From the NCBI RefSeq assembly GCF_001194135.2, contig NC_068981.1:109623170-109669580 (forward strand): 46,411 nt of DNA, in the 5' to 3' direction. The position numbers and the translations under genes are program-made. The notes beneath the pieces were generated by a model, which worked only from the letters and a program-made list of their open reading frames with translations, ran no database searches and had not been told where the DNA came from. This DNA is from Octopus bimaculoides (lineage: Eukaryota). Below are positions 1,534 through 46,411 of this stretch, in pieces; position 1 is the stretch's first letter, and each line of letters starts with the position of its first letter.

Positions 1534-2720
1534 CAGTGGGGGGAAATAAATATTCGTACTTGTCAAAATTATTTATTTAATTTGCATAAACTAAGAATAT
1601 GCAAAAGAAACTAATAAATTATAGTAACTAAGGAATTTATATTCAATTATAAATATTTAGGGGTGAAAAAAGTATTTGTACAGAACATAAATAACCGATA
1701 ATTCTGATTTAATACTTCGTAGCATAGCCATTATTCAGTTCCACTTCAACCAATATCTTCTAGTTGTTCTTAATCAATGACTCGCATCTATCTTTAGGAA
1801 TTTTTTCCCATTCTTCTTGACAAATTTTCTTCAAATCTGGAATGCATGTTGGGGCTATTGAATGAATTTTAATTTTCAAATAACGCCACAAATTTTCAAT
1901 GAGGTTCAAGTCAGGTGACTGGCTTGGCCATTCTAATAATTTTATATTGTGATCGACAATCCATTTTTTGGTAGACTTCGCCGTGTGCTTAGGGTCATTA
2001 TCTTGTTGTAAAACCTGCCTTTCACAAAGCTGGAGCTTTTCTACAGAGTCCCATAAATTATTGTTCAAAATATTTTAGTACAACTCTGCATTCATTCTAT
2101 CATCTATCACATGTAAATTGCCAGTGCCATTTGCAGAGAAACACCCCCACACAAGGATGTTGCTACCTCCAAACTTTACGGTAGGAATTGTGTTTTTCGG
2201 CGAATAGGTGGTACCATCTTTCCTCCAAACATGGCTATGCGAATTTCATCCAAACAATTCAATTTTCAACTCGTCTGTCCATAGAACATTTTCCCAGAAT
2301 GTATCAGATTTATCTTTATGTTCATAAACAAATTTTAAGCGGTCATCTCTATGCCTTTTAGTCAACAGCAGAGTTTTTCTAGAAGAGCATGACTTCAGTT
2401 CATTCCTATGAAGTTCATTGCTGATTGTTCATAGTGTAACACTAGTTCCTGAAGATCTAGGGGAAATCTTGCATGGTGCACCAGATCTTATTCTGTTTTC
2501 AACAGTTCCCAATTTTTTATATCTTTGAATAAATAAAGATATGGCAGAAAATGGAATACAGTGTCTCTGATATTTTCCTGTAACTTTTACCTGCTTTCCA
2601 CTGTTCAATAATAAGTTTTTCACTGAATTTGTGAGTTCTTTACTTTTTTGCCATTATTATGACACTACTTTATGTTGTCTCAGTGCTGAATGAAAAAGCT
2701 AGCATTTTGACACTTAAAAG
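1534..2720 (-). mobile_element. Tc1-like transposon (DD34E), degraded; only one TIR seen
   Basis: TA-cagtggggggaaataaatattcgtac end at 1534. Minus-strand motifs [19 protein letters not shown] and QQDNDPKHT...WPSQSPDLNLIENLW. The 2720 boundary is approximate. Confidence 0.9.
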
Positions 2721-3121: not shown

Positions 3122-3700
3122 AATACCATTCAAGTCTTTAATCTTTTATATAGATTTATAGGCATAGGCATGGCTGCATGATTAAAAAGTTCCCTTTGGA
3201 ATCAAATGGTTCATTCTTACTATATGGGCACTGTTGGCTGCAAGGAGTCCAATGCCTTGTTAGTGAAACTGGTAGATGGAAACTTAAGAAGCCCAACATT
3301 TGTGGGCTTCTTCACATATTCACACAAGTCTGTACATTTCTGTATTCTAGTATTGACATTGCATATATTTAAGAGATAAGAAATAATGTACATAATTCCT
3401 TTATTTCTTATCTCTTAAATATATGCAATGTCAATACTAGAATACAGAAATGTACAGACTTGTGTGAATATGTGAAGAAGCCCACAAATGTTGGGCTTCT
3501 TAAGTTTCCATCTACCAGTTTCACTAACAAGGCATTGGACTGGACTCCTTGCAGCTATATTATATGACACCAGCCAACAGTGCCCATATAGTAAGAATGA
3601 ACCATTTGATTCCAAAAGGAACTTTTTAATCATGCAGCCATGCCTATGCCTATAAATCTATATAAAAGATTGAAGACTTGACAGCCTAGTGAATGGTATT
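3122..3700. repeat. Long near-perfect inverted repeat (arms about 3131-3386 and 3401-3680, 14-nt spacer)
   Basis: The right arm is the reverse complement of the left, apart from two substitutions that I noticed and insertions of 5 and 19 nt. It explains the mirror ORFs 3178-3372(+) and 3415-3633(-). Confidence 0.95.
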
Positions 3701-7912: not shown

Positions 7913-8086
7913 CCCTTTAGAATTTAAATTGGCCAGATTTGGCCTTTCACACCTACCCTACAATGCCATTCTAAGAAAAAACTATCACATGACTGAAATC
8001 TCGAAGCAACAAGATAATGCATGACATTCAAAACAATGTGATTAAATAAGCATTATATTTGACAAAGTAATCTGAATGCTAAAGAG
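7913..8086 (-). mobile_element. piggyBac-type MITE (degenerate TTAA ends), inverted relative to the copy at 8795
   Basis: Ends are ctaa-ccctttag ... ctaaagag-ttaa; the reverse complement aligns with 8795-9000. Confidence 0.75.
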
Positions 8087-8235
8087 TTAAATGTTGGCTT
8101 TTATATTTAAATCAGTGTACCTCAAGTAAGATTTTATGCCAGTATACTTGAGTAATGTCTAACTGCTATTACTCTGCCTGTTTAATAAGTACTAATATGA
8201 AATGAGAAATTGATTTCTGATTAAATAAAGATATA

Positions 8236-8605: not shown

Positions 8606-8794
8606 TAAAAGCTATGTTTGTAGTGTTCAGTAGATGTATGCAGTGTTGTATGGTCCAGAGAAATGGTTCATTGTTTTTCAATGGTACTTAATGTAGAAGT
8701 AAACATAAATGAATTGCTTGTTATTATATAAAAAAAAATCTTTTCATGGATTCTTATTTTGAATGTTTGTAATTCCAAGGTTAGTATACTTTAA

Positions 8795-9000
8795 CCCTTT
8801 AGCACTCAGATTTCCCTGTCAAATGTAATGCTTATTTATTCACATTGATTTGAATTAGTCATGTATTACCTTGTAGCTTTGAGGTTTTGATGAGGTAGCT
8901 GTTAATTTTTAGAACTATATTGTAGGGTAAATGTGAGAGACCAGATCTGGCCAGTTTGAAGGTTATTTTGGCTGGATATGGCCAGCGTAATTCTAAAGGG
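8795..9000 (+). mobile_element. piggyBac-type MITE with TTAA target-site duplication
   Basis: TTAA-ccctttag ... ctaaaggg-TTAA; 206 bp; non-coding. Strand is only relative to the other copy. Confidence 0.82.
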
Positions 9001-14984: not shown

Positions 14985-15500
14985 GTAAGTTTATCTATGA
15001 GGCTTTTATGATTAAAAAAAAAGAGGATCTCTGTAGTTGTGAGTTCATCAACTTTTCCTATTTTACAGTAATTAATTTTTTGGAACTATAAAGTCACAAA
15101 GATGTTCAATCAACTCAGTTTCCTGCCCCTGAATTGACATATAAGTGGCTGAGTATCCTACAGACATATGTAATTTAATTCATACACAGAATCAGTGTGA
15201 CACAGTCTGTGACAAGGCTTTATCTCTTAAATTATATGCACAATCTTTCGAATAGGCTTCTATTGCCTAGTTTCACTCACAAGTATGAGCCAATCCAAGA
15301 TGCCACATAGTAGGATCAAATCCAAGATCTTGCTGCTGCAAAGAGAAAATCTTAATCATTAGGCCACATGGCACCTACTCTTATATTGTAAACAGTTCCC
15401 TTTTTTCCTAAAGACTATTATCGTTATAGATTAATAATTAGTAGAATTAACTCACTGTTCAGTTTCCAAAATAATTGTGTTTTTTTGTTTTTTGTTTTAG

Positions 15501-16990: not shown

Positions 16991-17677
16991 AGACAAAGCT
17001 GGAAACTTTCTGCTTAAGTATATGAAATAGTCACTGTTTCAGTATTTCAACAGATACTTTACACACTGTATGGGGTGCTCAAGCTTTGTTTTGATCACCC
17101 AGTTTTTATTTTGTTTCACTGCTTAGGTAAAGTGCAACATCCACAAATATAGCAGAAGACATTAGAGCTATTTTTGCATTTTCTTCTCTCACAATTGGCT
17201 ATATTTCTGAAATACAAAACTTATATTCAAGCTAGTTGTCACCTTGGAAAAGCATTTTCAGAATTGTCAGTTAATTAAAACATTAAGGTTGCATTCAACA
17301 TACCACTTTTCATAAGAAATAGTTAAAGGTTCAACAAAATGTGTTTCATCTGGTTTGTACAAAGAACATTTCTATCATCATGACTGAAAATAGTGGAAGT
17401 TGATCAAGTTTGATGCTTTTTATTCACTGAAGATACTTGAATCACGACTTTTGTAGTTGCATTAACTTTAAATGATATTGAAAAACTGTTTTCAAAGTTA
17501 TGTCATTAGTCTGCATTTGGATGAAGCTGAATCTGTCCTTTGAGTTTACGAGAAATCTTGATGATATAGAGCAAAATGGATTTCATTTTTGAAATCAACA
17601 CCCCCAAATTACTAGGAAACACCAGACAACAAAAACCATGTTCCCCAGTGTTATTTATCTCAATTCATGCCATTAGC

Positions 17678-17870
17678 TTATTACCTCAGTTTTAGTGAAG
17701 GTGGTGGTATTGTTTACAGTCGTGTTTGTTTGTTTGTGGACAAGATATCTCAAGAACTGCTGGATGGATTTGGATGAAACTTTCAGGAATGTTTGGTCTT
17801 GTGACTGGCACGAACTGATTAGATATTGGTACCGAACAAGGATTCTAGATTATTTGTTATATTTACTTTA
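17678..17870 (+). mobile_element. Helentron-associated (HINE/DINE-like) non-autonomous element, 5' part; matching 3' end at about 20250-20310
   Basis: ttattacctc...gtgtttgtttgtttgt...gatatctcaagaactgctggatggatttggatgaaactttcagga and the distal ctttggtggaggtttgtgctctctgagtgctc resemble these elements. Recognition only. Confidence 0.45.
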
Positions 17871-18059: not shown

Positions 18060-19305
18060 TCACTCCACTCTCACCACCTTCATCCACTACAAACACACAG
18101 ACTCACACTCATACCTCAACTTCTCCTCCTCCCTCCCTAAACACACCAAGCTTTCTGTCCCCTATTCCTAATTCCTCCATCTACGTAGGTTCTGCAGTGA
18201 TGACAATGACTTTGAGACTCAGTCTCAACTCATGGCTCACCACTTCATCCTACATGGATGTCCCTTCACCACTATCCACACCGCCCTTGCCAGAGCACCT
18301 TCCATGGACTGTGCATCTGCTCTCTTCCCCACACCTGCCCCACCATCTACCCTCNNNNNNNNNNNNNNNNNNNNNNNNNNNNNNNNNNNNNNNNNNNNNN
18401 NNNNNNNNNNNNNNNNNNNNNNNNNNNNNNNNNNNNNNNNNNNNNNNNNNNNNNNNNNNNNNNNNNNNNNNNNNNNNNNNNNNNNNNNNNNNNNNNNNNN
18501 NNNNNNNNNNNNNNNNNNNNNNNNNNNNNNNNNNNNNNNNNNNNNNNNNNNNNNNNNNNNNNNNNNNNNNNNNNNNNNNNNNNNNNNNNNNNNNNNNNNN
18601 NNNNNNNNNNNNNNNNNNNNNNNNNNNNNNNNNNNNNNNNNNNNNNNNNNNNNNNNNNNNNNNNNNNNNNNNNNNNNNNNNNNNNNNNNNNNNNNNNNNN
18701 NNNNNNNNNNNNNNNNNNNNNNNNNNNNNNNNNNNNNNNNNNNNNNNNNNNNNNNNNNNNNNNNNNNNNNNNNCTATCATATCACCGACTCCTTCACCTG
18801 CATGTCTACCAATGTCATCTACTGCATCTTCTGCACTTTCTGCCCTTCTCTATACATTAGGCAAACGGGACACTGCTTGGCTGACCAGTTCGCGGAACAC
18901 CTCTGAAACATCCGACTCAGCAATGACACCCTGGTCTTGCACCATTTCTGCTTTACTGGTCACTCTTTGCAACACCTGTTTGTGTTTGGATTGTCCTTGC
19001 ACAGGGGCCATCTGGACTCCCGTCTTCGCCCTGAACAGGGATTAATCTTCTCTCTTCGCTTCTTTGCGCCACATGGGCTCAATTCTCCTTCCCTCTTCGT
19101 CTACCCCCTCCTCCTCCTACCCACCTCTCCTCCGATTCCTACTTCTCTTCAGTCCTACTCTTCTCTCTTCTCTTCACTCCTACCCACCTTCTCCTTCATC
19201 GTCACCCCTCCCTCGTAACCCCACCCCTACACAATTCAACCCACCTCCCCATCCATTCCATCCCACCCCACCCAATCTCTTACACCCACTCCCACATACC
19301 CCGCC
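18060..19305 (+). mobile_element. Penelope-like retroelement (RT C-terminus plus GIY-YIG endonuclease), degraded and gapped
   Basis: HYKHTDSHSYLNFSSSLPKHTKLSVPYS*FLHLRRFCSDD; DSFTCMSTNVIYCIFCTFCPSLYIRQTGHCLADQFAEHL; EQGLIFSLRFFAPHGLN. Confidence 0.88.
18355..18773. other. Assembly gap (N run)
   Basis: 419 N. Confidence 1.
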
Positions 19306-20173
19306 NNNNNNNNNNNNNNNNNNNNNNNNNNNNNNNNNNNNNNNNNNNNNNNNNNNNNNNNNNNNNNNNNNNNNNNNNNNNNNNNNNNNNNNNNNNNNNN
19401 NNNNNNNNNNNNNNNNNNNNNNNNNNNNNNNNNNNNNNNNNNNNNNNNNNNNNNNNNNNNNNNNNNNNNNNNNNNNNNNNNNNNNNNNNNNNNNNNNNNN
19501 NNNNNNNNNNNNNNNNNNNNNNNNNNNNNNNNNNNNNNNNNNNNNNNNNNNNNNNNNNNNNNNNNNNNNNNNNNNNNNNNNNNNNNNNNNNNNNNNNNNN
19601 NNNNNNNNNNNNNNNNNNNNNNNNNNNNNNNNNNNNNNNNNNNNNNNNNNNNNNNNNNNNNNNNNNNNNNNNNNNNNNNNNNNNNNNNNNNNNNNNNNNN
19701 NNNNNNNNNNNNNNNNNNNNNNNNNNNNNNNNNNNNNNNNNNNNNNNNNNNNNNNNNNNNNNNNNNNNNNNNNNNNNNNNNNNNNNNNNNNNNNNNNNNN
19801 NNNNNNNNNNNNNNNNNNNNNNNNNNNNNNNNNNNNNNNNNNNNNNNNNNNNNNNNNNNNNNNNNNNNNNNNNNNNNNNNNNNNNNNNNNNNNNNNNNNN
19901 NNNNNNNNNNNNNNNNNNNNNNNNNNNNNNNNNNNNNNNNNNNNNNNNNNNNNNNNNNNNNNNNNNNNNNNNNNNNNNNNNNNNNNNNNNNNNNNNNNNN
20001 NNNNNNNNNNNNNNNNNNNNNNNNNNNNNNNNNNNNNNNNNNNNNNNNNNNNNNNNNNNNNNNNNNNNNNNNNNNNNNNNNNNNNNNNNNNNNNNNNNNN
20101 NNNNNNNNNNNNNNNNNNNNNNNNNNNNNNNNNNNNNNNNNNNNNNNNNNNNNNNNNNNNNNNNNNNNNNNNN
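19306..20173. other. Assembly gap (N run)
   Basis: 868 N. Confidence 1.
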
Positions 20174-21733
20174 NTTTTTAGTATTCTCATTTATGAGAGC
20201 AGTTGAGTTTATTTCAGATATTCTCATTTTAAAAATCGTCTCAAGCTAATCGTTGAGAGAATGTTGGTGTTGCTTTGGTGGAGGTTTGTGCTCTCTGAGT
20301 GCTCTTGCTTGAGTTATTTCTTGCTGCTAATTTTTTTTTTTTAATGTGAATTACTGCTTACCAAAATTATTTTAGGTATCACTATGAATTTTAAAAAATA
20401 TTTAGATGTAATTTCTACTGTACTTGGAGAGCATCCAAAAAGAAACATTTTGATACCTTATTTGTGAAATTTGGATGAATATTTGAGGAAATATGATAAT
20501 CTGAATCGTCAGCAAATGGGTTGAAATCTTGCCTAATTGAATAACTAGCCATATTTGTGTTGTCATATTTTTGAAACTGAAGTGATAATCACCTTCAAGT
20601 TATATGAATTAATAGTGACCATGGGATAGCAGTTGCTTTCTTTTTCAGATTCTTGGAAAGAAATCTTTTTTTGGCAATTTTAAAAATATTTATGTAAAGC
20701 CTATTTTGTTACATGTCACAACTAGTCAATTTCACAGTGTTTTTAGACCTACTTAAATCCAAAAGTACATGCCACAGGGACTTGAGTTTTGGCATATTTG
20801 TAGTAGGTAAGAGTTAAATAAATCTTGAGATTTTGGGATATGACACCATAACAATAAAATTTTAATGGACTATTAAAAATGGCTATAAATGGCAAAGTTT
20901 TGGATCAGATATCTACATAAGTTGAATTTTTTCCATTTTTTTTTTTTTTTAGTACAGTTTTGGAAATAATGGGAGTAAGCTTTTTATGAAAAAAGATTTT
21001 TTGAAAATTTGAAGAAGTTTACTAACTTAGTGAGAGTAATGAATAAAATATTCTCTGTGTGCCAAGCTTGTAAAATAAAGAAGCACATACATAACTTCAT
21101 ATGCAAATCTCTCGAGATAACCAAGTTTGTAGAAGGGTGGGGGGAAAAATGCATTAAGAATTGATACCAGCAGAGCTTGTTCAAGATAGAAAGGATTAGG
21201 AAGAAAGTAAGTAAAGCATGGTGAGTAAAGAATAGTGACAAGTTTCAAGACAATGTTTATCAATGCTACTCCCAGAGATGAATTTGCAGTGGGAGACTTA
21301 TAATACCACCACCACCCCTCCATTTTTGTTTTTTTTTATACAACACTTTGGTTGTTGAAATACACTGCTTTTGTTTAAATTGATTTTGAAAATAACTTTT
21401 CATAATTTTCTGTGGTTGGATGCCCTTCCTAATGCCAGCAGCTTTTCATTATGTACTCGGTGCTTTTTTCGTGCCACCAGCACTAGTGAAGTTGCTATGC
21501 AGCTTGCAAGACTAGGAAACCCAAAGTGGTCTTTATCTTGGATGTATGATTGAGCAGAGTATTAAAAGTGATATGAAACATAGGACAACTTGTAGCGTGT
21601 ATAAGGGGAAGCTGAGAGATATGGTCAATGGAAGTAGTAGGTGTGTGGGATTTGTTTTTTGCCCTTAAGCAATAATGAGAGAAAGAGAGAAGAGGCAAAA
21701 GTGAGCCACAAACTTTCATGAGAGAGACAAAAT

Positions 21734-27597: not shown

Positions 27598-29347
27598 GTA
27601 AAGGTACATCAAAACTCAGGTTTTGATCCTTGGTCACAAATCTATTACATTCCTCCTACAAATATATCTATTACTTTAAAATGCTTTTTGTTATTAAACT
27701 TCTACTCTCAACAGAAAAACTTTGATGAACATTTGAAAGTAGCTTGTGTTGGAAATAACATTTGACAATCGTGTATGAGACATACAAGTGGGAGTTTGTG
27801 AAATCCTTGTAGCTGCTTGTTTAAAATAAAATATATTTGAAATATTTATAACCATAATAAATCATAGCTCAATATATAGTTTTCACCAGGGAAGTTTTTT
27901 TCAAACAAATGAGATTTTGCTTGTTAAGCATCTATTTTGCAATTGAATTATTGTAGCATGTAGACAGGTTCCATCTTCAACCAACAACCACAGCTTGTTT
28001 ATTCAGAAAACATTTTCATACTTTAAATTCCTGTTTCAGCATGAGGTCTGACGTTTTTCTATTATTAATGTAGTATTTGTTTTTGTATCATTTACATATC
28101 CTTCAATTTCCCATTCTTGCTGCTTTTGTATCTGTGAACTCCATCACAAACTCCACAGGTAGAAAAAATGTATGGTAATATTAAGCTTTAGTAGAATGAA
28201 TTCAAAAGAACGTTTATGCTGTGTATACAATCATAAAATCAAATCATTATCAATGATAAATGAAGCAATAAATTTAAAAAAGCATTTCAAATTAACAGCT
28301 GACATTAGAAATCAAAGGGAGATAATTTACTTTACAATGTGATTGAAACTGATCAGTGAAGCATATTTCATAAATAGAGGGTTGATTTTTATGATCGTAA
28401 ATAGCAAAAGCTCATTTTCAAATTCACTCCACTAAACCTTGATATTGCCAAAGCTTCATCTTCTAGTAAGCTCTTCTCTTTTTGAACAAATGAAAATACT
28501 TGTTCATATATCTAATTTGACAATATCTGAATAGAGACTGAGTAAATTGTTAGTAAAACTAATTCATATAAAAAAGAAATACTTCACCGGGTACAATATA
28601 ATTAAGAATAAGAAAATAGAAAATATCAATATTGAGAGAAAAATAAGATAGGAAAACACATAGGATATGTATCTACATTAGGTAGAGGGGAAACCATAGG
28701 GGTGAGTAGTTACAGAAAGGGTTTTTGAATTCATTCTTTCTCCATATACTTTCACTTCATATATAAATAAAAATAGTTTTATTAATATTAGGCTGATATG
28801 TATGGGATATGACATAAAATGTGAATGATATTGAAATAAAATTCTATTTTAATGAAAGGGAAAAGTTGGTTGCAGATGGGTACAACAAATGTTGACTTCA
28901 TTCTTTCCCAGTTAAACATTACAAGTTTGAATGAACTTTCTTGATGAAAAGTATTCAAATATTGCTGAATGTGTTCAGCTTGGTGGATGAGAGTATCACC
29001 GTTCACTCTTCCATTTTAGGCTTCCCTGTGTTTTATGTATAGTTTTGAAAAACTTGACTTTGACATAAATGTTGTTTATGAGATAAAGCAATGAGATGTA
29101 AGGGTATCAGTGCTTTTATCCCCAAGTGATAGGAGAAATACATAATAATTAACTTTAATTAGATTTGAACCTTCATTCTATGTTTCACAATACAAATGAT
29201 GGGGAGAAAAAAAATTTCATTTCCATAAATACAATATAGAATATTAAATTTTAGTTAAATTCACATATTCAATATATGCTTTATATTGAACAATAAATAA
29301 TTAAATTTAAACTCCACGCTTCATTAAAACAAATACGACTTATAATA

Positions 29348-30538
29348 TTGGGTCATTCCATAAATAATGCTGTTTTTTCAATTGCATGAGCTAAAGTCAG
29401 AGGGGTATGGGATAAGAGAGCAATTCGATTGTTATTTTTTCAAAGCTATAATGGAAGTGACAAAGGAGCATTTTCGGCATATTTTGCTTTATAAGTTCAA
29501 TAAAGACAACAACGCAACAGAAAGTGCAAGGAATATTAATGCAGTATATGGGGATTGGACAATAAGCGTAAGCCAGTGTCAATGGTGCTTCTAGAAATTC
29601 CGAGCCAGAAACTACAGGCTGGAAGATGAGGCTCATCCTGGAAGATCTGTAGAGCTCGACGAGAACGTCCTGCAAACCCTGGTGGAACAAAATCCCATCA
29701 TAACTGTTGAGGAACTAGCAGAGAAGCTTAGATTTGGTCATCCAACCATTCATCAACACCTGTGTGCCATTGAAAAAGTCAGCAAATTGGGTCAATAGGT
29801 TCCTCACAAACTTTCCAAGTATAATTGCGCACAGAGAGTGAATGTGTGCTCTTTTTTACTGTAACCTTTTTTCGCGAATGAACCTTTTTTGGACTGAGTA
29901 GTGACTGGTGACGAAAAATGACTTCTCTATAAAAATGTCAAGCAGTGGGTAGGAAAAGGAGAAAAACTGGCAACCCAGGCTAAAGAAGGTCTTCACTCAC
30001 GTAAGGTGTTGTTATCTGTTTGGTGGGATATGAAAAGCCGAGTTCACTTTTAAACCTAAACCAAATGATAACAAAGGAGATCTACTGTGAATAGCTTGAG
30101 TGGCTTAAGTTAGCACTAGAAGAAAAACGACCATCTGATTTGAAGATGAAAGGCATTCTTCCATCAGGATAATACTCAGCCACATACAGCAGGGATGACA
30201 TTCCAAAGGTTGGAGCAGTTTGAATGGGAAATGATGCCCCACCCACCATATTTGCTGGACATTGCCCCATCTGATTATCATTTATTCCGCAGTCTTCAAA
30301 ATCATTTGGACGGAAAAAATATGAATTTTGTAGATGAAGTCAGAACAATACTAGAGGAGTATTCTTCATCACAGACAAGTGAATTTTGGAAGAGGGGCCT
30401 TGCAAGAGTACCAGATAGATGGAAAAGTATTGTAGAAAGAAGGGAGAGTATATTTTAGATTTAAAAAAACTTTCTTTATCTTAATTTTGAAAAATAAAAG
30501 AAGTATAAAAAAACTGCATTATTTATGGGATGACCCAG
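29348..30538 (+). mobile_element. Mariner transposon, near full length (1191 bp), both TIRs and TA TSD, transposase inactivated
   Basis: TA-ttgggtcattccataaataatgc ... gcattatttatgggatgacccag-TA; motifs VTGDEK, HQDN, HPPYLLDIAPSDYHLFRSLQNHL; same family as 479-1463. Confidence 0.95.
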
Positions 30539-35849: not shown

Positions 35850-38099
35850 AGTCAATCAAGACTTCAGTAAGAGTTGAAAAACTGGGGAAACTGTAAATAA
35901 ACCATGGAAAGAACTGGACCTAAATCAATTGTAAATTCTACACATCTTTTAACAATGATATTTAATTATTATTTCCAGGACCAATTTGTTTTGTCAGAGA
36001 TAGACTATGACCACCACCCCTCATGGAACAGTATGGTCAGGTGAAGAACATAGTGATAATGCTGGTTGGGATTATCATATCAAGATTGTTTCAGCAGGTT
36101 TTAATTTATTTGGCTTTAAATGTATGCAGCTGTTATTTATCACTATATGATCAAATTGTTCTTTACTGCATATGCTATTTTCTGCAAAACTAGGTCAACT
36201 TTCACCTGTTAGAATTAAGATTTTTATATAGGTTACAACAGCACTCACAAACAAAAGTTATAGCTAACATTTATCTTAAAATTAGGCTAGTTGATTTGAG
36301 ATTTCAAGGTGGAGTCAATTGTGATTTAAAATCCTATTGCTCATACCTTTAAAGAAGTGAATCCTTTCTTTCCTTTGTTTCAGCCAAAGTAATTCAACTC
36401 TACTTTGATCTTTTATAAGGCATTCTGATTGTATTCTCAATGCATTGGGAGATCATGTCACAATATCATTTTGGCATCATTTGGAAACTTGATGTATTTG
36501 AGATTTTATTCAAGGAAATACAGGCTTTGTTATTAATCATTTTATTCTTGCTTGAAATGTTGCCCCCAAATCATCCTAACAAAAAAGCATTATATCAGTG
36601 AGACAGCGGGTGACTTGTTAGGGTTCTGTGAATGCTCAGCTAAAAAAAAAAAAAATTATAACACAGACTCCATTGCAGTTCTTGAAACCCTTCCTTTTGT
36701 TTCAGTTTCTTATATATATCTATTGTTGTACTAAAAAAAAAAGCAACAAAAATATTTTCATAGTTACCAGTATTTAAGCCACAAAAGAGTTCATAGCTGA
36801 TGAATAATGAAAAAAAAACATTGGTTTATTCAAGATTGTAACTGAAAATTTTGCTCTGAACAATCCTGATGAGTGTTAATATTTTTTTCTTAGAAAACAT
36901 CAAACAAATAATATCTGGGTAAAAGTCGAGCAAACTATCTGAAAAGTGTCCTTTTAAAATTCTATTCCTGAAGGAGGCTTTTAGTAAATAACAATATATA
37001 CATAACTAAAATAAAAAAAAACTCTGAACAAATATTGCTTTGAAAGGAAGAAAAAAGAAATGGTTGTGAGTTTCTCACTTATTACACTCAGTTTTCATTG
37101 CTTGATTTCCTCTCAACTTTTATTCTTTTCAATGTTATATGAAGGGCAAAGATTTTACTTTATAAAACTTACAGCAGAATGTCATTTTCTGTCTAGGGAC
37201 CAATTTTTGTATGAATGAAGCTTTTAAGATGCCTGCACAAACAACTGATATGTATTAATAGGAATGAAACACACTCTTCCTTGTCTTTGCTCATATCCCC
37301 ACACCAAAAGATGAAAACTTATTTTGCAATCAATTACTAAACCAGCACTATTCATAGTGGGGAAAATTGAATTATGTTTGGTTAATGCATCAATCATAGT
37401 TTAATTTGTGTTAATTTCTCAGGTGTAGTTTATTTTTCATGTCAGTCTTTAAAGACCAATTTGTATAATGGTGGGAGAATAAAGTTCATTTAAAAAATCT
37501 CTTGTAACATATGACAATGCTATCTTGAATTGAAAAAAGGAAATGTGATGGTAGATGTCAAAGTCATATTGATATAGCAGGTGAAAGGTGGTGGTTCTTA
37601 AACATTGTATTCTACTGAGAACTCTCTATTGAGCACCAACTGTGATTGTCAAGGTATTGAATAAACTGTGTTTATAAACCATTTGTTTCAAATAAAATCT
37701 TTCATTCCTAATGATTCCAGCAGCAACTAGTCTTCTGTTAACAGCGATATGACTGGTAGTATCAACTATTTTCTTGTTTGGAACTATTTATAACAGTTAT
37801 CCTTTTGGAAATGGCATGTGTCAGTCTTATCAAATTTAACATTGACATTTTGTACAGATTAAATAAAGACCAACGTTGTCTAAACATTCTTTTCTGTCTT
37901 TTCACTTTCCTTGTTCTATTATTGATTTATAATTATCATTTTAAATCAATTCCATAAGATTCAAACTCCAATGAGAAATACAGAACTGGTAGCAACAGAA
38001 TGCAATAGAGCTTCAAAACTTTGCAGACGTCTGTGTAAAAACACAGACAACACAATGAAAGAAATTTGCATACTGGCTGTTGGTGCAAAATGCTTACTT

Positions 38100-38223
38100 G
38101 TGGGGAGATGAGTTGTTTCTATCTCTAGTAGTTGAACGTCCATCATTGATAAAACTAAGGAATGTTGAAATCATGGGATCGGATGGTCTCAGTGCTGGAG
38201 ATGGTGGGGATTTATTGTCCCAC
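38100..38223 (+). ncRNA. Candidate structured RNA hairpin, copy 1 (family unknown)
   Basis: 38100-38130 pairs with 38193-38223 in one register: 18 Watson-Crick pairs, 10 G-U pairs and 3 mismatches. Covaries with copy 2. Confidence 0.6.
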
Positions 38224-38401
38224 TAGCAATATAAACATATGCATTTTTCACCAAACACCAATATGAGTTTCTCTCATGGTATTTACTGCAGTATAGTTTG
38301 TTCTAACAGAACATTCGCACTTAAGTAGGGATAAATATTACTTTTCAGTATTAATACTGCCTCTATTGCTAATATTGTTTAACAAGCTCACTGTATTGCT
38401 G

Positions 38402-38525
38402 GTGGGGAGATGAGTTGCTTCCATCTCTGACGGTCAAGCATCCATCATTGATAAAACTGAGGAAGGTTGAGATCATATGATCTGGTGCTCTCAACGTCAG
38501 AGGTGGCAGGGATTTATCTCCCCAC
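38402..38525 (+). ncRNA. Candidate structured RNA hairpin, copy 2 (family unknown)
   Basis: 38402-38432 pairs with 38495-38525: 25 Watson-Crick pairs, 4 G-U pairs and 2 mismatches. The stem extends 8 more bp outward (tattgctg/tagtaata). Confidence 0.62.
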
Positions 38526-38699
38526 TAGTAATATAAACTAGAGTGCAATTTACAGGTAACTACCACAGTACAGTTTGTACTAACAGAACGTCCATGTTTA
38601 AGTGGAGATAAGCTCTTGGTATTAATAGTGCCTCTGTCGCTAATATTTATTTCTTGAAATACGTTCCACATCACCCTGAACAATTATGGATGAAATACA

Positions 38700-39650
38700 A
38701 CCATCATTTCAAGTATTTGAAACTGCCATGAATTGTATGAAAGCCCAACCCTCTCAAATCCAAATGACGACCTTTTTGAATTACTGAAACATGGGATTAC
38801 CTCTCAAAACCAGGTTTTTCATTCTGATCCTGAAAATATGGGAAGCTTGCTTGGTTTCAAATGAATTTAAAACTGCAACCATTATAACCATCTTCAAGAA
38901 AGGAGATTGAAAATCTTATGGGAATTATCCTGGAATAACATTGCTCTTCATTGTAGAGAAGGGTCTTCCTGAATCCCAATGAGGTTTTTGTGTATCATGG
39001 CTCAACTGACATGATATACAAGACAAAAGCAAAGAACCACAAAAACCATTCTTCTTGTCTATAATCTGGAAAAGGTTTTTGGCAGTGTATCAAGGAAAGC
39101 CAAATTTCCACTAGACAATTAAAATGTTGATATTGGTATTATTTTGATGGTAGACTATTTAACATAGCTAGATTTAGATCTTCACTTTGCTCTTTGTCCC
39201 ATACATCAGGAACTCCAGAAATCAGTCAACAACTTCACCCATGTGTATGTGCTTTGACCTCAGTAAATGTCAAGAAGACCAATCTCCCTGATTTCAACAT
39301 CACCATCTCTGAAATATCTTAGAAGTTTTTTTTCCAATAAATGTATTTTTGAAAGTGGAACACAGATTTGGATCAGTCTATTCAGCGTGTGGAAAACTGT
39401 CAAAATGAGTCTTTAAGAGCAAAGATCTTACCCCCATCCTAAACAGATAGTTTATCTCAACATTATCATTCAATTGTGAAACATGGACATATTGTGAGAA
39501 CATCAAAAGTCTGGAACATTTCTACTAACAGTGGCTTTGTGACGTTTTAAACATCAGATAGCAGACTACATAGCCAACAATGTTGTCTTTGAAAAAGACA
39601 ACAGTCAAAGCATAGAAACCACTATCATGAAACACCAATGATCAGGATAT
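38700..39650 (+). mobile_element. Very old RTE-like LINE RT remnant
   Basis: ATIITIFKKGD*KSYGNYPGITLL and an NLEKVFGSVSR (DLEKAFDSV-like) motif. Boundaries are approximate. Confidence 0.6.
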
Positions 39651-40291
39651 GTGGTGACAATAAAAAGAGTAAGATTTCTTCCTTAGATTTGCTTTGGTGA
39701 ATTAACCACTGCCAAAAGACCACAATGATATCTTTTCTGCTGTTACAAAGATCAGCTAAAGTCAGCTCTCAAAATTGCTTGATTGAGACATGGGAAATTA
39801 AAGTCCAGAGCTGTTCCATCTGGTGTCAGTCTATTACCACCGAAACTGACCTTTTTGAAGTAAGAAGAAAAACATTAGGAATGTAAAATACAGCAATAAT
39901 TACTATACTCTCCTTTAACTCTTCCTTGTCATTTTTATTTTGTTCAGTGTGAGGATTGGCCTTTTCAGTCTTCAGTGTCATTGCTATCAGCAGTGAGGGA
40001 CCATTTAAATTAGGAGTGAATTGAATTTCTCAGATGAGTAACTTTTAAACAATTTCTTACTTAACTTCGATTTTTTGGAGCAACTGACAGGTGAATTAAT
40101 ATGGCTGTTATAAATTCGTAAATAGGTTATGTCTAGCTACTCTGTACTTTGTTAAGTGCAGGGTTATGATGATTAATTTTAAAAAATTAAACTTTAAAAA
40201 GTTAGTAAAATGATTAATTTATTGAATTTCAAAATACATAAATTTGATTTTTTTGTTTTCTTATAAAAGTTCTTACAAAATCTTTTTCATG

Positions 40292-40510
40292 TTATCGTAA
40301 TACTTTTGTTACAAATTCACTAACTAATTTGTAAAAAGCTTGTTCTGGATTTGATGTAAAACCTGTTTGACTTGTGCTGCGTCCAATTGATAGACCAGTA
40401 GGAGAAGTATTGGAAACTGGCTGCTGCTGTTGAGGTTGACTTCCACATGGAGAGACTGGAGTTGTGCCTCCTTTACGAATATGCCGATGCATTGATTGCA
40501 AAAATGTATT
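40292..40510 (-). CDS. NUP188: NUP188 terminal coding exon (NTFLQSMHRHIRKGG...EQAFYKLVSEFVTKVLR*)
   Basis: Poly-T plus gcag acceptor on the - strand; 219 nt to TAA. Resembles the human NUP188 C-terminus as I recall it (STLLSSLSRYFRRG...LIQLVQAFVRHMQR). A - strand AATAAA lies at 40218-40223. Confidence 0.87.
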   Translation of the reverse strand, partial: NTFLQSMHRHIRKGGTTPVSPCGSQPQQQQPVSNTSPTGLSIGRSTSQTGFTSNPEQAFYKLVSEFVTKVLR

Positions 40511-40989
40511 CTGCAAAAAAAAAAAAGTTTACAATTTTTCAATCTTAACATTTCATGCTGTTTACTTAATCTTTTCTCTAGACAGTCTCATCAAAACAAA
40601 ACTGAATCATAGTTACAACAATTGCTACTTTGCACCTCAAACCATGTTGTCAAACACAGAGTGTCCTAAAGAATTGTACTTTACTCACACCATCCAAAGT
40701 GACAAGAAATTATTAGAGAATTGAGTGCAGATCAAACTGCCACAGATCATTCTGATGTAACTTCTACAAATCAATGTGAGTACAATTGAATTCCAGAAGA
40801 GAGGTTTTCCTCACTCCCATTTTCTTTTTATAGTAGAAAATAACACAACTATAGCAAGAAATCAACAAAAGTGTCTCTATTGAGCTACCCAATCCAAATA
40901 AAGCAAGTGCAGTTAGTCTTTATGAAAAACAGAATGCAATTTCATTTTGCTTATTAAATGGATGTTGTAACAAGAATTATTCCTCTGAG

Positions 40990-41910
40990 TTCCATTCACA
41001 AACATTATGTAGTGGTGACTTATCTACTATATTGTTGGTGATGTCCTATTGAAGGAAGCCATACTATTAATGTATGAGTTTGAAACAGGGACATAAAAGT
41101 TGCTAATTGGTACTATGAAGCTCACATCCATGTTGACTGAAGTGCATCTACTAAAGCTGTGAAATATCTATATTCAAACACACAATTCTACAATCTCATT
41201 GGAAAGAGAACAAGAATGAGTTTCTCTTGAGATCAGTGATGCAAATCAGTATGATAAGATCATTAAATATGAAAATTGCAGGGATCATCTGAATCAAATT
41301 GGAAACTTGAATTGCTTAATCAGTAGAAATGTCTTTAGATTCAATCATCACATAATCTTTATCTAAACGTAGAAAATGCTCAATCAATGAAACAAATGGC
41401 TTATTTTGATAAAAATGCAGAAGATCCAGAAGGGAGATACATCTTTTATTGCAATTTTATTTCTTACAATTCTTCATTCCTGCTCCCTGCCTTAGCCTCT
41501 AAATTTATACATGTATTGCACCAACCTTATTGATGATTTTCTAGAACACAGAAAAAAGCAAAACCAATGACCACTGAAAATGCAAGTGAAGCTGCCAATG
41601 ACATCCTGTGTGTACTGGACAACCAGTTGATTCAATATGAGCATTCAACATTTTAATTAATGTTTGCCAGCTGCAGGCCACCAGTAACAAAATGTGCCTG
41701 TTAACCCAGATGAACTAGATCCTTCAGCTGAAGTTTATTACGATGACCACAGAAATATGTTCAACAACAAACAGAAGATTGTTTTTGAGTCAATCAAAAG
41801 TAAAATTGACAACAATGAAGGTGGCCTGATGTCTGAATTGTGCTTGCTGTAGCTCCATCAGGTAATGCAGCTATGCTATTGAAGCTTGGATGGACTACCC
41901 ATTCAGATAA
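40990..41910 (+). mobile_element. Helitron Rep/PIF1-helicase remnant in the last NUP188 intron
   Basis: AHIHVD*SASTKAVKYL (compare AHINVE...SVKYL), FNNKQKIVFESIKSKIDNNEGGL and VLAVAPSGNAAMLLKLGWTTHS (compare LAVASSGIAATLL-x-GGRTAHS). Confidence 0.75.
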
Positions 41911-41926
41911 AATCTACATAAGCCAG

Positions 41927-41968
<42 letters not shown>

Positions 41969-42345
41969 TGAAGATGCAACTGGTCATGATGCTTAGCAAT
42001 TGATGTAGCACAAAGCAATAATAATACAATGGCATCTTGAAGTTTTGAACCTAGCACTTGAAGATGTACATACTGACTAGAAATAAAATACGTAAACACC
42101 CCAGCACCTTCTGTTAATTAGAATAGATTGCCTAACACCAGGTTACATAACAATAGCATTCACAGGTTCAGTTTATTTAAATTCTCTAAATAACCTGTAA
42201 ACTTGATTCAGTGATTTTCTGAAGTGTAGTATTTAGCATAGTAAAACAGTTCAACTGATAGCTTGACCAACAATGGATTTAATTATATTTCTGTAAAAAT
42301 GTTTAGAAAGTCAAAAATTATGAAATCATTTCCATTTTTACTTAC

Positions 42346-42475
42346 AAGGTCAGCTCCAAGCTCCCTTTTAAGAAGTTGTTTGTCTCTAGCAGAAAGAGTT
42401 GGCTCTTTTAGGTATCGACAAGCTTGGGACATAATCAACATTAAAGAATTTTCTAGAACAAACAGTACCAAATAT
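42346..42475 (-). CDS. NUP188: NUP188 exon (YLVLFVLENSLMLIMSQACRYLKEPTLSARDKQLLKRELGADL), phase 2/0
   Basis: ttttacag acceptor and gtaagt donor; 130 nt. Resembles the recalled NUP188 segment MENCFYLLISQAMRYLRDPAVHPRDKQRMKQELSSEL. Confidence 0.9.
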
Positions 42476-42859
42476 CTGTAAAACAAAACATACATTAATA
42501 TGTAATTAGTCATAGCTTTTGTACAGAGCTGTTAGGATAAAGAAATTTTGTGAGAACAAATAGTATAGGTACACAGGCTGAAATATGACTCTAAGAGATT
42601 GTTCCAATTTAGAAACAAAATTTTTTATCTGTTTTATTTTTCTAATATTGGATTCCTCATAAACTAGGAAAAGCTATAACAGGTTTAGTTCAAAACTTTC
42701 TTGGGTTAATTTTTAAAATATTTTAAATGATGTTCAACAAAAATCATGAGCCATGAAGAGAATTTTAATGAGTTTTATGCAGCCCATTCATAAAAATAGT
42801 CTTTTAAATAATATTATGCTGAAATTAAAAATATAGCTTTAAAAATAAATTGAATTTAA

Positions 42860-42967
42860 ACATGTAAATAAACATATAAATGTCCATACCACAATGTTCA
42901 TGCCTTTAAGACAAGCTAGTTGTTTGCAATCATATTCTGCTTAGTTCAGTCCTATTACCTGGTCCCT
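42860..42967. repeat. Direct repeat copy 1 (copy 2 at 44241-44343), flanking the 62-nt NUP188 exon
   Basis: acatgtaaat...aaatgtccataccac(a/g)atgttcatgccttta...gctagttgtttgcaa...ttacctggtccct is present twice, about 1.38 kb apart. Confidence 0.85.
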
Positions 42968-43101
42968 AGAAGGCTTAGCTGGTTCCTTCAGAGAAAAATG
43001 TATCTGAAACAACTGCCATGAACTTTCATTGATCAAATGAGATCTAACTCCATCAGTCGAGACCACAGGTACTTTGGATATTTTTACATGTAAGGATATA
43101 C

Positions 43102-43199
43102 CCAGATTAGGTATATGATAAATTGTAGTGAACAATGAAATAAATACCTGCAAGTATTGATTTCATTGTTCACTTTAACTTATCATGTACCTAATCTGG
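43102..43199. repeat. 98-nt hairpin (46-nt arms, 6-nt loop) in a NUP188 intron
   Basis: 41 of 46 positions are Watson-Crick complementary; the loop is ctgcaa. Confidence 0.9.
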
Positions 43200-43877
43200 A
43201 TGTATGCCAACAAGTAAAAATGGACATTTATAATAGATGAATTTGCATACCAGAAACACCCTTTCTACAAACTGGTGAAACTTAGCATGGTAAAGAAGGT
43301 CATGATTCTAGCTCATACTGCCTTTATGCAATTAACACCTGTGCTATTGTTATAAAGGAATACCAAGATACAGAAATCCATTCAATTCTTCTCTATGGCT
43401 GTGAGACTTTCTCTTTACAGAAGATCTCTATTGCCTCATGATATTTAATAACTAGCATCTTATACAATGTGTCATATACACAAAATACACTGTACATGAT
43501 CTCCAATAATGTATTTCTCTGGAGCAGCTATGATCTAGGCAAGAAGTTACTGTTTCCTTTTTGGTGGCCACAGTTAATGCCTCACACTTTGATTCACTTC
43601 CATATAAACTGTACTATTGCTATCATCCAGACTGTGAAAGGAAGTAGTATAGAGGAATGATAAACTGTGCGTTCTACACTTGTAACATTTCTCAGCCTAA
43701 ATTCTGCTGCTGGCAGTTTTTTTCATCCCCAGATGTTAATAAAAAAAGGGGGAGGATGATCTATATTGGAGTTGATTTAATTAACTATACTTCACTTAAA
43801 TACTTGCAGTTTTGTAAAAATATTAATCTCATGCAAATGAAATTACTGATGAATGTTTGTATATTGCAGTTACTTAC

Positions 43878-43939
43878 TTGGGTATATTGTGATTAATAAA
43901 ATCATTTCCTTTCTGTGGAGAAGAAGCTCTGGGATCAAT
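43878..43939 (-). CDS. NUP188: Probable NUP188 exon (IDPRASSPQKGNDFINHNIP-K), phase 0/2
   Basis: Pyrimidine tract plus aag acceptor and gtaagt donor; 62 nt. Supplies the phase-2 junction (AA|A = Lys) the next exon needs. Sequence is a poorly conserved linker. Confidence 0.7.
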
Positions 43940-45362
43940 CTTTTGACAAAGAGAAAAGCCAAAAATTTATGATTACTTTCTACCATATATATTCTCACAC
44001 ACACACACATAATAAAGTTTATGCCTTAGGGAAATAAGAATTCTGATATTTGGAGCAAAGCCTATTGTTTGGCAATATCAGATGTTTGAAAAATGTACTT
44101 AAGGAGAAAGAACTATGGTTAGAAAAGGTATTAATAAAGGAGTGATTTACAAAAGTAGTGTGTGTAATGGCTGGTAGGATGGGCAGTGATATGAATAGGA
44201 ATATAGCAATGAAGTGCAGGTATAAAATACAGTAGTTTAGACATGTAAATAAAATATATAAATGTCCATACCACGATGTTCATGCCTTTAGCTAGTTGTT
44301 TGCAACCAGATTCCGATTAGTTCAATCTTATTACCTGGTCCCTTGAACTAGTGTCTGCTTCCACAGCCTCAGTTTGATTTATGCTTTTTAAGTGAAATTT
44401 GGTACTCTGAAGCCCCTAGGTATGTATGTGTCTCCCTTCCATACTTTTTTTCTCCAACAATGCCAACTCTTACTCTACCCTTTCACAACTCTAAATTTGT
44501 TCCTCTCATTATTTGTCTAGAATCATTGTAGTCTCTCTCTTCATTTCTCCATCACTTAGAAGGGCCATAGACATTGCAAGTTGACCTTACTAGTACTGAC
44601 CTCACAAATGACTGACCAGTACATACTATAAAGTGATTGGTGGCAGGAATGGTCTCCAGCTGTAGAAACCATGCCAAAGCAGATATTGAGATACTGATCC
44701 ATGCCAGGATGGAAGTCAGATATATAATGATGATGATGATGACATAGACACCCGAGCCTATCTCTCAATCACAGTTTAGCCTCTCAGCACCTGACATAAA
44801 ACCACCTCCCTGTTTCACATACTCTCCACCCCACTTAAGTAAAAGAGCTTTTTCCTGTTCTTTTCATTTCTTGCAAGCTAATACCAGTGGCACAAAAAAA
44901 AAAAAGCACTAAGTACACTCTATAAAGTAGTTGGTGTTAGGAAGGACGTCAAAACATACAAACCATGCCAAAGTTGACATTGGAGCTCAGCATGGCCCTG
45001 CGGCTCATTAGATCCTGAACAAGATGTCCAACCCATACACGCATAGAAAATGTTAAATGCTGCTGATGTGTGCGTTGCATGCCTATTGCCCCCAATGTGT
45101 AGCTGTATGTGTGCATCACTAAAACTCCAGAACTACACAACCAATTTCATTCAAATTATACACATGCCTTACTTAGGGTCCATGTAGTGTCATGGGCCAA
45201 AAAAATTTTCCAGCTTCTGGCCTAACGCAAGCCTGGAGCAATCTCTTATCTCTTACACTATTTCAGTATTATGTGTCAAAAGTGAAACAATAACATCTCT
45301 ATTTATATATACTAGCAGAGATACCCAGCCTTGCTCGGGATTAAAACGGCATAGTTTTTTAG

Positions 45363-45616
45363 TTTTACTTGTTTCAGTCATGTGACTGCGGCCATGTTGG
45401 AGCACCGCCTTCTAATTATTCTATCAGTGCCCTTTTGCCAAACCGCTAAGTTATAGGTATGTAGACACACCAACATCGGATGTGAAGCAATGGTGTAGTT
45501 ACAAACACACACACACACGTGCACACACACACTAATACACACATATATATGACAGTGTTCTTTCAGTTTCCATGTACGAAATCCAGTCACAAGGCTTTGG
45601 TGGGCCAGAGGCTATA
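45363..45616 (-). mobile_element. SINE family A copy, 5'-truncated
   Basis: ttttacttgtttcagtca...(CA)n...cacaaggctttggtgggccagaggctata. Confidence 0.8.
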
Positions 45617-46411
45617 ATGCATATATATATATATATATATATAAATATATCAAGCATAAATTGAAAACAGAACACAAAGGATATCGCAGTACACGTGTTT
45701 CAAGCTTTATAAACAATCTGTCATTACATCAGTATAGGTATATTGTTGATATAAAAGATGGTTTAAAGATATCTTCAGTCGCAAACATTGCTAGTCCCAA
45801 AGATTACATCACAAAAGAAAAAGTACACTTAGTATTACCCATTATAATAGGTTTATCACATCCCTTTAAAAAGGTATATCTGCATAAAGGTTCGTTGGAT
45901 TTCAAAAATCTGCCTGTACTGTACCACAATTCAGCATAGAGTGAATGTTAAATAGATTGGATTGAGTTTATATTTAACTAGCATGTATAATATAGGAGAA
46001 GATGAAAGGTATAAAGTAAAAAAATATAAAAGTAATAGAAGTCAAACTGAGAGTAATAAAAGTAAAAATAAGGATAATAAAGTTTGATACATATTCAATC
46101 AAGATTTAGCAAAATTGGAATAAAGTAACAAAAGAAATAAAACCATAAAGTAGAATAAGAGATAAAGAGATAAAATACTATAGAGTTGAGGACAGGATGC
46201 TGTCTTGGATGGGATTGTAGTGGTCATAAATAATTTCTTAGCTAGACCACGCGTTGAAATATAGATTAAGATTGTAATTTGATAACATTGTGATGAGTGG
46301 TCAGTTTACCCAAACACACCACTAAAAATTCCTAGCTTTATAAACTTATCTATTACATGGGTACATACACTTACTTAGAAGTCATAGTATATGTATATGT
46401 GTGTATAGACA

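Follow-up and report, generated by a model that had tools for sequence, protein, structure and literature searches.

The window, by which we mean the whole 46,411-nt stretch of Octopus bimaculoides DNA that was analysed, holds two convergent neighbouring genes, GPR107 on the + strand and NUP188 on the - strand, with a tandem pair of hairpin-forming units between their 3' ends, an arrangement which agrees with the gene context proposed in the earlier note (Table 1). Ten exon segments of GPR107, from 10857 to 35849, matched a distant orthologous locus (L002, ENA ERZ25069866) by tblastx, and a query of the concatenated exons recovered 1529 GPR107 homologues, the best being 69% identical and originating from gastropods. 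The NUP188 exon corresponds to residues 1646-1682 of 1739 in Xenopus NUP188 (7wkk_B, E = 0.0013) and to residues 1656-1692 of 1749 in human NUP188 (5ijo_J); it was detected by the PDB sequence search, whereas NUP188 went undetected when all the - strand frames of 39400-46411 were searched with Pfam. An ORF at 40292-40516 (- strand), which ends in ...EQAFYKLVSEFVTKVLR and a stop codon and has no PDB match, may be the last NUP188 coding exon.

The hairpins begin 2.25 kb beyond the GPR107 stop codon, and six + strand AATAAA hexamers (35896, 37010, 37478, 37660, 37691 and 37862) lie between the two. As octopus 3' UTRs have a median length of 350-380 nt (PMC9699675) and these hexamers all lie upstream, the hairpins are unlikely to belong to a normal GPR107 3' UTR, which was one of the roles first suggested for them. 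No related hairpin was found downstream of GPR107 in L002, a compact, distant locus and the only one retrieved. Just downstream of its GPR107 gene L002 contains three copies (15424-15484, 17636-17700 and 18099-18161) of an unrelated palindrome of ~61 nt with a perfect centre (GAAAACAAAGACGC.GATCAGCT.CGCGGT / ACCGCG...); these belong to a separate family of palindromic repeats in that other species.

Table 1 Coordinates of the features at the GPR107-NUP188 junction, counted from the first letter of the window.
Feature	Position	Strand	Description
GPR107 last coding segment and stop codon	35805..35849	+	Ends ...RESSHEYD, stop; tblastx against L002
Left outer arm of longer palindrome around hairpin A	38043..38093		Outside the direct-repeat unit
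Unit A	38094-38376	+	136-nt hairpin, then tail
Hairpin A	38094..38229	+	136 nt; fold energy and pair table; 31-bp core with 10 G-U pairs
Conserved 5' arm block GTGGGGAGATGAGTTGYTTCYATCTCT	38100..38126	+	2 differences in 27 nt; copy in B at 38402-38428
Conserved apical block TCCATCATTGATAAAACTRAGGAAKGTTGARATCAT	38139..38174	+	3 differences in 36 nt; copy in B at 38441-38476
Tail A	38230..38376	+	Conserved blocks CAGTAYAGTTTGTWCTAACAGAAC and GTATTAATASTGCCTCTRTYGCTAATATT; direct-repeat families at 75% and 90%
Right outer arm of longer palindrome	38238..38290		Within tail A; 25 nt of the arm missing in tail B
Spacer between units	38377..38395		19 nt; non-homologous to the sequence upstream of A (alignment)
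Unit B	38396-38647	+	136-nt hairpin, then tail
Hairpin B	38396..38531	+	136 nt; better-paired copy; nearly continuous rod of ~53 pairs
Tail B	38532..38647	+	Homology to tail A stops at GCTAATATT (38639-38647)
NUP188 exon ENSLMLIMSQACRYLKEPTLSARDKQLLKRELGADL	42343..42453	-	PDB sequence search

The two units form a direct repeat at an offset of 302 nt, in which 38094-38236 and 38396-38538 are 78% identical over 143 nt without a gap. The 124-nt core reported in the earlier note (38100-38223 and 38402-38525) was found to have exactly 29 differences (76.6% identity) and no indel, its stem of 31 positions (38100-38130 paired with 38193-38223) is bulge-free in our pair table, and UCCAUCAUUGAUAAAACU is unchanged between the copies. 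The G-G (38115/38208) and pyrimidine-pyrimidine (38118/38205) mismatches sit at identical positions in both copies, and the base-by-base table reproduced all counts given in the earlier note. The stem reaches six pairs farther out than first described, to 38094/38229, so that the lower stem of hairpin A comprises 37 positions (38094-38130 paired to 38193-38229), above which 38131-38192 form a second, imperfect stem and a loop; in copy A the six-pair extension includes one A-C (38096/38227) and one T-T. Every mismatch in the 37-pair stem of hairpin B is shared with hairpin A. The 3' arm opposite the conserved 5' block carries 6 differences over the same 27 pairs, and it should be noted that none of the block-conservation figures, including those in Table 1, survive correction for multiple windows. 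The homology downstream of the hairpins, also claimed previously, extends through tails of 116-147 nt with blocks at 75-90% identity, and tail A carries 25 nt and 6 nt which are absent from tail B in the alignment.

Substitutions between the copies have mostly left the stem paired. Within the 31 positions the three double changes previously listed are present (A-T to G-C at 38127/38196, G-C to A-T at 38128/38195 and A-T to G-C at 38130/38193), alongside eight swaps between Watson-Crick and G-U pairs and one change at a position which is unpaired in both copies; the sole broken pair is 38106/38217, an A-G in copy A. Across the 37-pair stem (74 nt) we counted 19 substitutions and 3 broken pairs, against 7-9 expected in a neutral simulation (P = 0.0025 when the transition fraction outside the stem is used and P = 0.036 when it is set to 0.9). 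Single-sided changes kept the pair in 8 out of 10 cases (binomial: P = 0.0034). Covariation by itself was not significant, as 49 of 500 column shuffles of these two sequences reached three double changes; all three are transition/transition changes, and at least three arose in the neutral simulation with a probability of 0.03-0.16. Transitions outnumbered transversions 17:2 in the stems and 33:15 elsewhere, which is a trend only (Fisher: P = 0.12). It should also be noted that several of our P values lie between 0.003 and 0.04 and that all come from one pair of sequences.

The hairpins fold far more stably as + strand than as - strand molecules: hairpin A reached -50.7 kcal/mol (z = -4.8) on the + strand vs -24.7 on the - strand, and hairpin B reached -76.3 kcal/mol (z = -10.5) vs -51.0. 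As the earlier note had counted, the 31-bp cores contain 14 G-U pairs (4 of them in B) and zero A-C; for the inner hairpins the G-U:A-C counts are 14:3 in A and 7:0 in B. Among uncompensated stem transitions, seven form G-U and none form A-C (P = 0.008), and the private changes of copy A are likewise 7 to 0. By comparison, two other palindromes in the window gave nearly the same energy on both strands and balanced G-U:A-C counts (43078-43223: -69.9/-68.0 kcal/mol, 4:4; 3130-3681: -446/-447 kcal/mol, 1:1), and the outer arms of copy A, with a ratio of 1:5, do not share the + strand polarity. Since neither the control palindromes nor these outer arms are polarised to the + strand, a locus-wide bias of mutation or repair fails to explain the pattern; we also rejected a mutational strand bias on the grounds that tail substitutions are symmetric (C>T 8, G>A 8) and that the outer arms are polarised the opposite way.

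Taken together, the retained pairs, the 7:0 polarity and the controls argue for selection on a single-stranded molecule of the + strand. The selection on RNA structure claimed in the earlier note is therefore partly supported: one strand has retained more pairing than chance and neutral decay would allow, which is a stronger argument than covariation, and the covariation between two sequences is not significant on its own. Sequence constraint on the hairpin is weak at best, because its divergence, at 21-30%, is much the same as in the tail (29%) and not clearly lower. The 143 nt of hairpin contain no indel, vs the indels of 25 and 6 nt in the tail. The pairwise Jukes-Cantor distance is ~0.29-0.37, or 0.15-0.18 per lineage, and under the octopus calibration of JC 0.2 at about 56 million years (PMC13282606) this would date the duplication to roughly 40-50 million years per lineage.

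Hairpin A lies within a longer palindrome. Its outer arms (38043-38093 vs 38238-38290) are 73.6% complementary over 53 nt (E = 4e-5; local-alignment shuffle: P = 0.003), and the whole palindromic stretch of 253 nt folds at -82.1 kcal/mol. Terminal inverted repeats of the kind that mark MITE and foldback elements are thus present, with palindromic arms that span ~245 nt at copy A. On its left side the unit starts (38094) within this palindrome, and the right arm is partly deleted in B, so a local tandem duplication fits better than two independent insertions, and the locus is probably palindrome-derived, part of a pre-existing longer palindrome having been duplicated locally in tandem. Palindromes of similar size are common in the window, which makes the raw material ordinary. 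A weak AT-rich self-complementary stretch (37887-37985; 64% over 100 nt, E = 1.5e-5) is also found ~100 nt upstream of the copy A palindrome.

We compared the locus to known RNA families and to further sequence collections. In line with the earlier note, which could match the hairpins to no known family, an Rfam 15 cmscan of 36000-41000 (E ≤ 10), taking in miRNAs, snoRNAs, snRNAs, ribozymes including hammerheads, 7SL, 5S, Y and vault RNAs, returned nothing over 38043-38647. A hammerhead or retrozyme was rejected, since no hammerhead or other ribozyme model matched at E ≤ 10, and so was an H/ACA or C/D snoRNA, as no such model matched and the hairpin exceeds the length of these RNAs. ARAGORN detected no tRNA-like or tmRNA sequence. 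Exact patterns had zero matches in metagenomes (two JGI scans), prokaryotic genomes (GTDB) and viral contigs (IMG/VR). At the protein level, a profile of the - strand frame across the repeat gave no candidate among 5.8 billion proteins, the + strand ORF across the repeat gave one chance match only among 1.84 billion representatives, and exact look-ups of five window ORFs found none on record. These negative results bear on the collections searched and not on the copy number in the host genome. Sequence words of the hairpins occurred in no relevant paper of the literature searched, nor in the supplementary files of the paper on octopus miRNAs, and BLAST found no target-like sequence complementary to the hairpins elsewhere in the 46-kb window.

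In its likely way of working the locus would come closest to hpRNA loci and to MITE-derived miRNA genes, without qualifying for membership of one or the other. MirGeneDB-style rules ask for at least 16 paired positions between arms of ~22 nt, which the 37-position stem with its 2 conserved mismatches provides; they also describe a pre-miRNA of ~55-70 nt with a short loop, and here 62 nt lie apical to the 37-bp stem in a hairpin of 136 nt. These apical 62 nt, the upper part of the hairpin, are themselves paired, and canonical animal pre-miRNAs have a smaller apical region. With 44-53 pairs per copy the structure is longer than expected of a miRNA and shorter than a classical hpRNA. Drosophila hpRNA loci such as hp-CG4068 and hpRNA1, which Okamura and Czech in 2008 and Wen in 2015 are said to have described, are reportedly genomic inverted repeats of which one strand is transcribed, often in tandem; they are lineage-specific and change rapidly in sequence while pairing is kept. 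Our locus resembles them in its inverted repeat, its tandem copies and its pairing kept while sequence diverges. However, classical hpRNA stems span several hundred bp and can pair with the target gene they regulate, whereas the rod here is ~50-55 bp and the window holds no target-like sequence. The human miR-548 family reportedly arose from the palindromic MITE MADE1 (a finding attributed to Piriyapongsa and Jordan, 2007), a ready-made hairpin having become a small-RNA precursor, and the likeness lies in the unequal arms (5' 2/27 vs 3' 6/27 here) and the conserved internal mismatches. MADE1 has many dispersed copies with TA target-site duplications, unlike the two tandem copies in this window, which have no such duplication, a 62-nt apical region and no Rfam miRNA match. 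Foldback and MITE-type elements share the long inverted arms, and similar palindromes occur elsewhere in the window; those are strand-symmetric, whereas this hairpin is polarised to the + strand by 18-25 kcal/mol and is followed by a non-palindromic tail. The locus also resembles IRAlu-type ADAR/Staufen substrates in forming long intramolecular dsRNA on the sense strand, 3' of a coding region. In those substrates, however, the dsRNA forms between two separate repeat copies and pairing is not under selection, whereas here every copy folds back on itself and has retained its pairs.

The reading we lean towards, tentatively and with rather less than even confidence, is a hairpin RNA that derives from a palindrome, was duplicated locally and most probably serves as a precursor of small RNAs. 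A segment of a longer DNA palindrome would have undergone an old local tandem duplication, and since then the inner 136-nt hairpin of both copies would have been kept foldable as + strand RNA. A + strand transcript, produced either by read-through from GPR107 or on its own, would fold into two rods of ~50-55 bp, and these rods would act as long-hairpin RNA, of hpRNA or miRNA-like type, which RNase III enzymes may cut into small RNAs. The best candidate for a guide would be the conserved 5' arm, GUGGGGAGAUGAGUUGYUUCYAUCUCU. While transcription, processing and any target are inferred only, the retained pairing, the polarity, the indel-free hairpin, the two mismatches held in place and the uneven conservation of the arms all suggest a hairpin RNA. 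A more specific version, which we regard as unlikely, would make this a lineage-specific small-RNA gene midway between palindromic repeat and gene, with a two-tier hairpin (a base of ~11 bp followed by two successive duplexes of ~22 bp) transcribed within the convergent GPR107/NUP188 3' region and with products possibly also acting in cis on a NUP188 3' UTR that would extend across it in antisense.

The same strand polarity could have arisen in a different way if the units are adjacent copies of a non-autonomous element that is dispersed and moves through a single-stranded intermediate, the hairpin having been selected in master copies for the propagation of the element and having no host function. 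Candidates are a SINE-like retroposon and an element of Helitron/Helentron type with tandem monomers, and selection on the sense RNA or ssDNA intermediate would leave both polarised G-U pairs and compensatory changes. We consider this the main rival, possible but doubtful. Its prior is high, as around two thirds of the octopus genome consists of repeats, with hundreds of unclassified SINE families, and the 0.15-0.18 per lineage found here falls within octopus repeat expansions at JC 0.065-0.2 (PMC13282606). The window is moreover rich in mobile elements, contains other palindromes, and has a putative degraded LINE-like frame, a motif reading unconfirmed by Pfam or PDB, adjoining unit B. Against this, the locus lacks every defining part of a SINE: a Pol III-type head (tRNA, 5S or 7SL) was absent by ARAGORN and Rfam, an A-rich, simple-repeat or LINE-derived 3' tail was absent, the units ending in ...GCTAATATT, and BLAST found no similarity between the unit tail and the putative LINE 3' region downstream. 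No target-site duplication of at least 5 nt was found within 8 nt of the boundaries at 7 candidate boundary pairs, in a test where ~30% of random positions give one by chance and where decay could have erased a real one. No third copy was found in the 46-kb window by motif searches, relaxed BLAST or an unfiltered covariance model, which picked only unrelated palindromes on both strands equally. Insertion would also leave the unit boundary inside the copy A palindrome unexplained, and decay after insertion should be symmetric, yet the private changes of copy A are 7:0. The palindrome boundary, together with the absence of a target-site duplication, of a tRNA, 5S or 7SL head and of a third copy, suggests a local origin.

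The units could also be a neutral relic, in which an old foldback- or MITE-like palindrome was partly duplicated in tandem and is now decaying, its pattern coming from chance, arm-to-arm conversion or template switching. Palindromes and inverted repeats are common in the window (3130-3681, 43078-43223 and 7926-8091/8790-8957), hairpin and tail evolve at about the same pace, and the three double changes, which are adjacent, could be a single event and do not exceed the shuffle control. Template switching has reportedly been shown to create compensated hairpins (Monttinen and Loytynoja are said to have described this in PNAS in 2022). However, conversion or template switching would be expected to give Watson-Crick pairs and arbitrary replacements, not an all-transition pattern with G-U intermediates, and neither explains the 7:0 polarity. 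With the neutral simulation at P = 0.0025-0.036, and with control palindromes and outer arms of the same locus that are unpolarised or polarised the opposite way, we judge this explanation to be quite unlikely. We judge it very unlikely that the hairpins are a cis-acting dsRNA element of GPR107 transcripts that rarely run this far, by a long 3' UTR or by read-through, serving as an ADAR/Staufen-type platform with no small-RNA processing. They do lie downstream of GPR107 on the same strand and form long, nearly perfect dsRNA, and A-to-I editing in octopus occurs mostly in hairpin-rich introns and 3' UTRs (PMC9699675), but the distance from the stop codon, the six upstream AATAAA hexamers and the short octopus 3' UTRs again stand against it, and generic ADAR substrates require neither conserved blocks nor conserved internal mismatches.

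Should the hairpins prove to be transcribed and processed, they would provide an example, dated by the divergence of the two copies (about 0.15-0.18 substitutions/site/lineage), of a palindromic repeat becoming a hairpin-RNA gene, in a group with a large expansion of new miRNAs and heavy editing of dsRNA (PMC9699675). Should they prove to be dispersed, the finding becomes one of ordinary repeat annotation. The strand-polarity test used here sets G-U-forming against A-C-forming transitions and takes nearby palindromes as its controls. Two copies are enough for it, and applied genome-wide it could tell hairpins selected as RNA from inert palindromes.

The window also contains several other repeats. 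The palindrome at 3130-3681 is 552 nt long and 90% complementary (BLAST), is situated either before GPR107 or in its 5' part and looks like a young foldback-type element. The strand-symmetric palindrome at 43078-43223 (146 nt) lies in a NUP188 intron and is bracketed by an 84% direct repeat ~1.4 kb apart (42842-42971 and 44224-44347); it may be a MITE-like element together with flanking sequence. A mariner-like transposon remnant is present in two copies which are 85% identical (649-1463 and 29345-30287) and have ORFs that include MEQNPIITVEELAEKLGFGHPTIHQHL..., and positions 1760-2068 (- strand) hold a fragment of a Tc1-like transposase. Directly after unit B and in the same orientation, 38700-40000 (+) carries degraded frames with motifs resembling the reverse transcriptase and C-terminal region of a LINE (IFKKGD..YGNYPGITLL, ESQ.GF, NLEKVFGSVSR and CETWT), for which Pfam and PDB searches gave no confirmation of a LINE reverse-transcriptase remnant. 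Two assembly gaps (runs of N at 18355-18773 and 19306-20174) are flanked by C/T-rich, proline-codon-like low-complexity sequence. A GPR107 intron holds inverted arms of ~166 nt (7926-8091 and 8790-8957) which are 79% identical and ~700 nt apart, and this inverted repeat folds somewhat more strongly on the + strand (-339 vs -306 kcal/mol).
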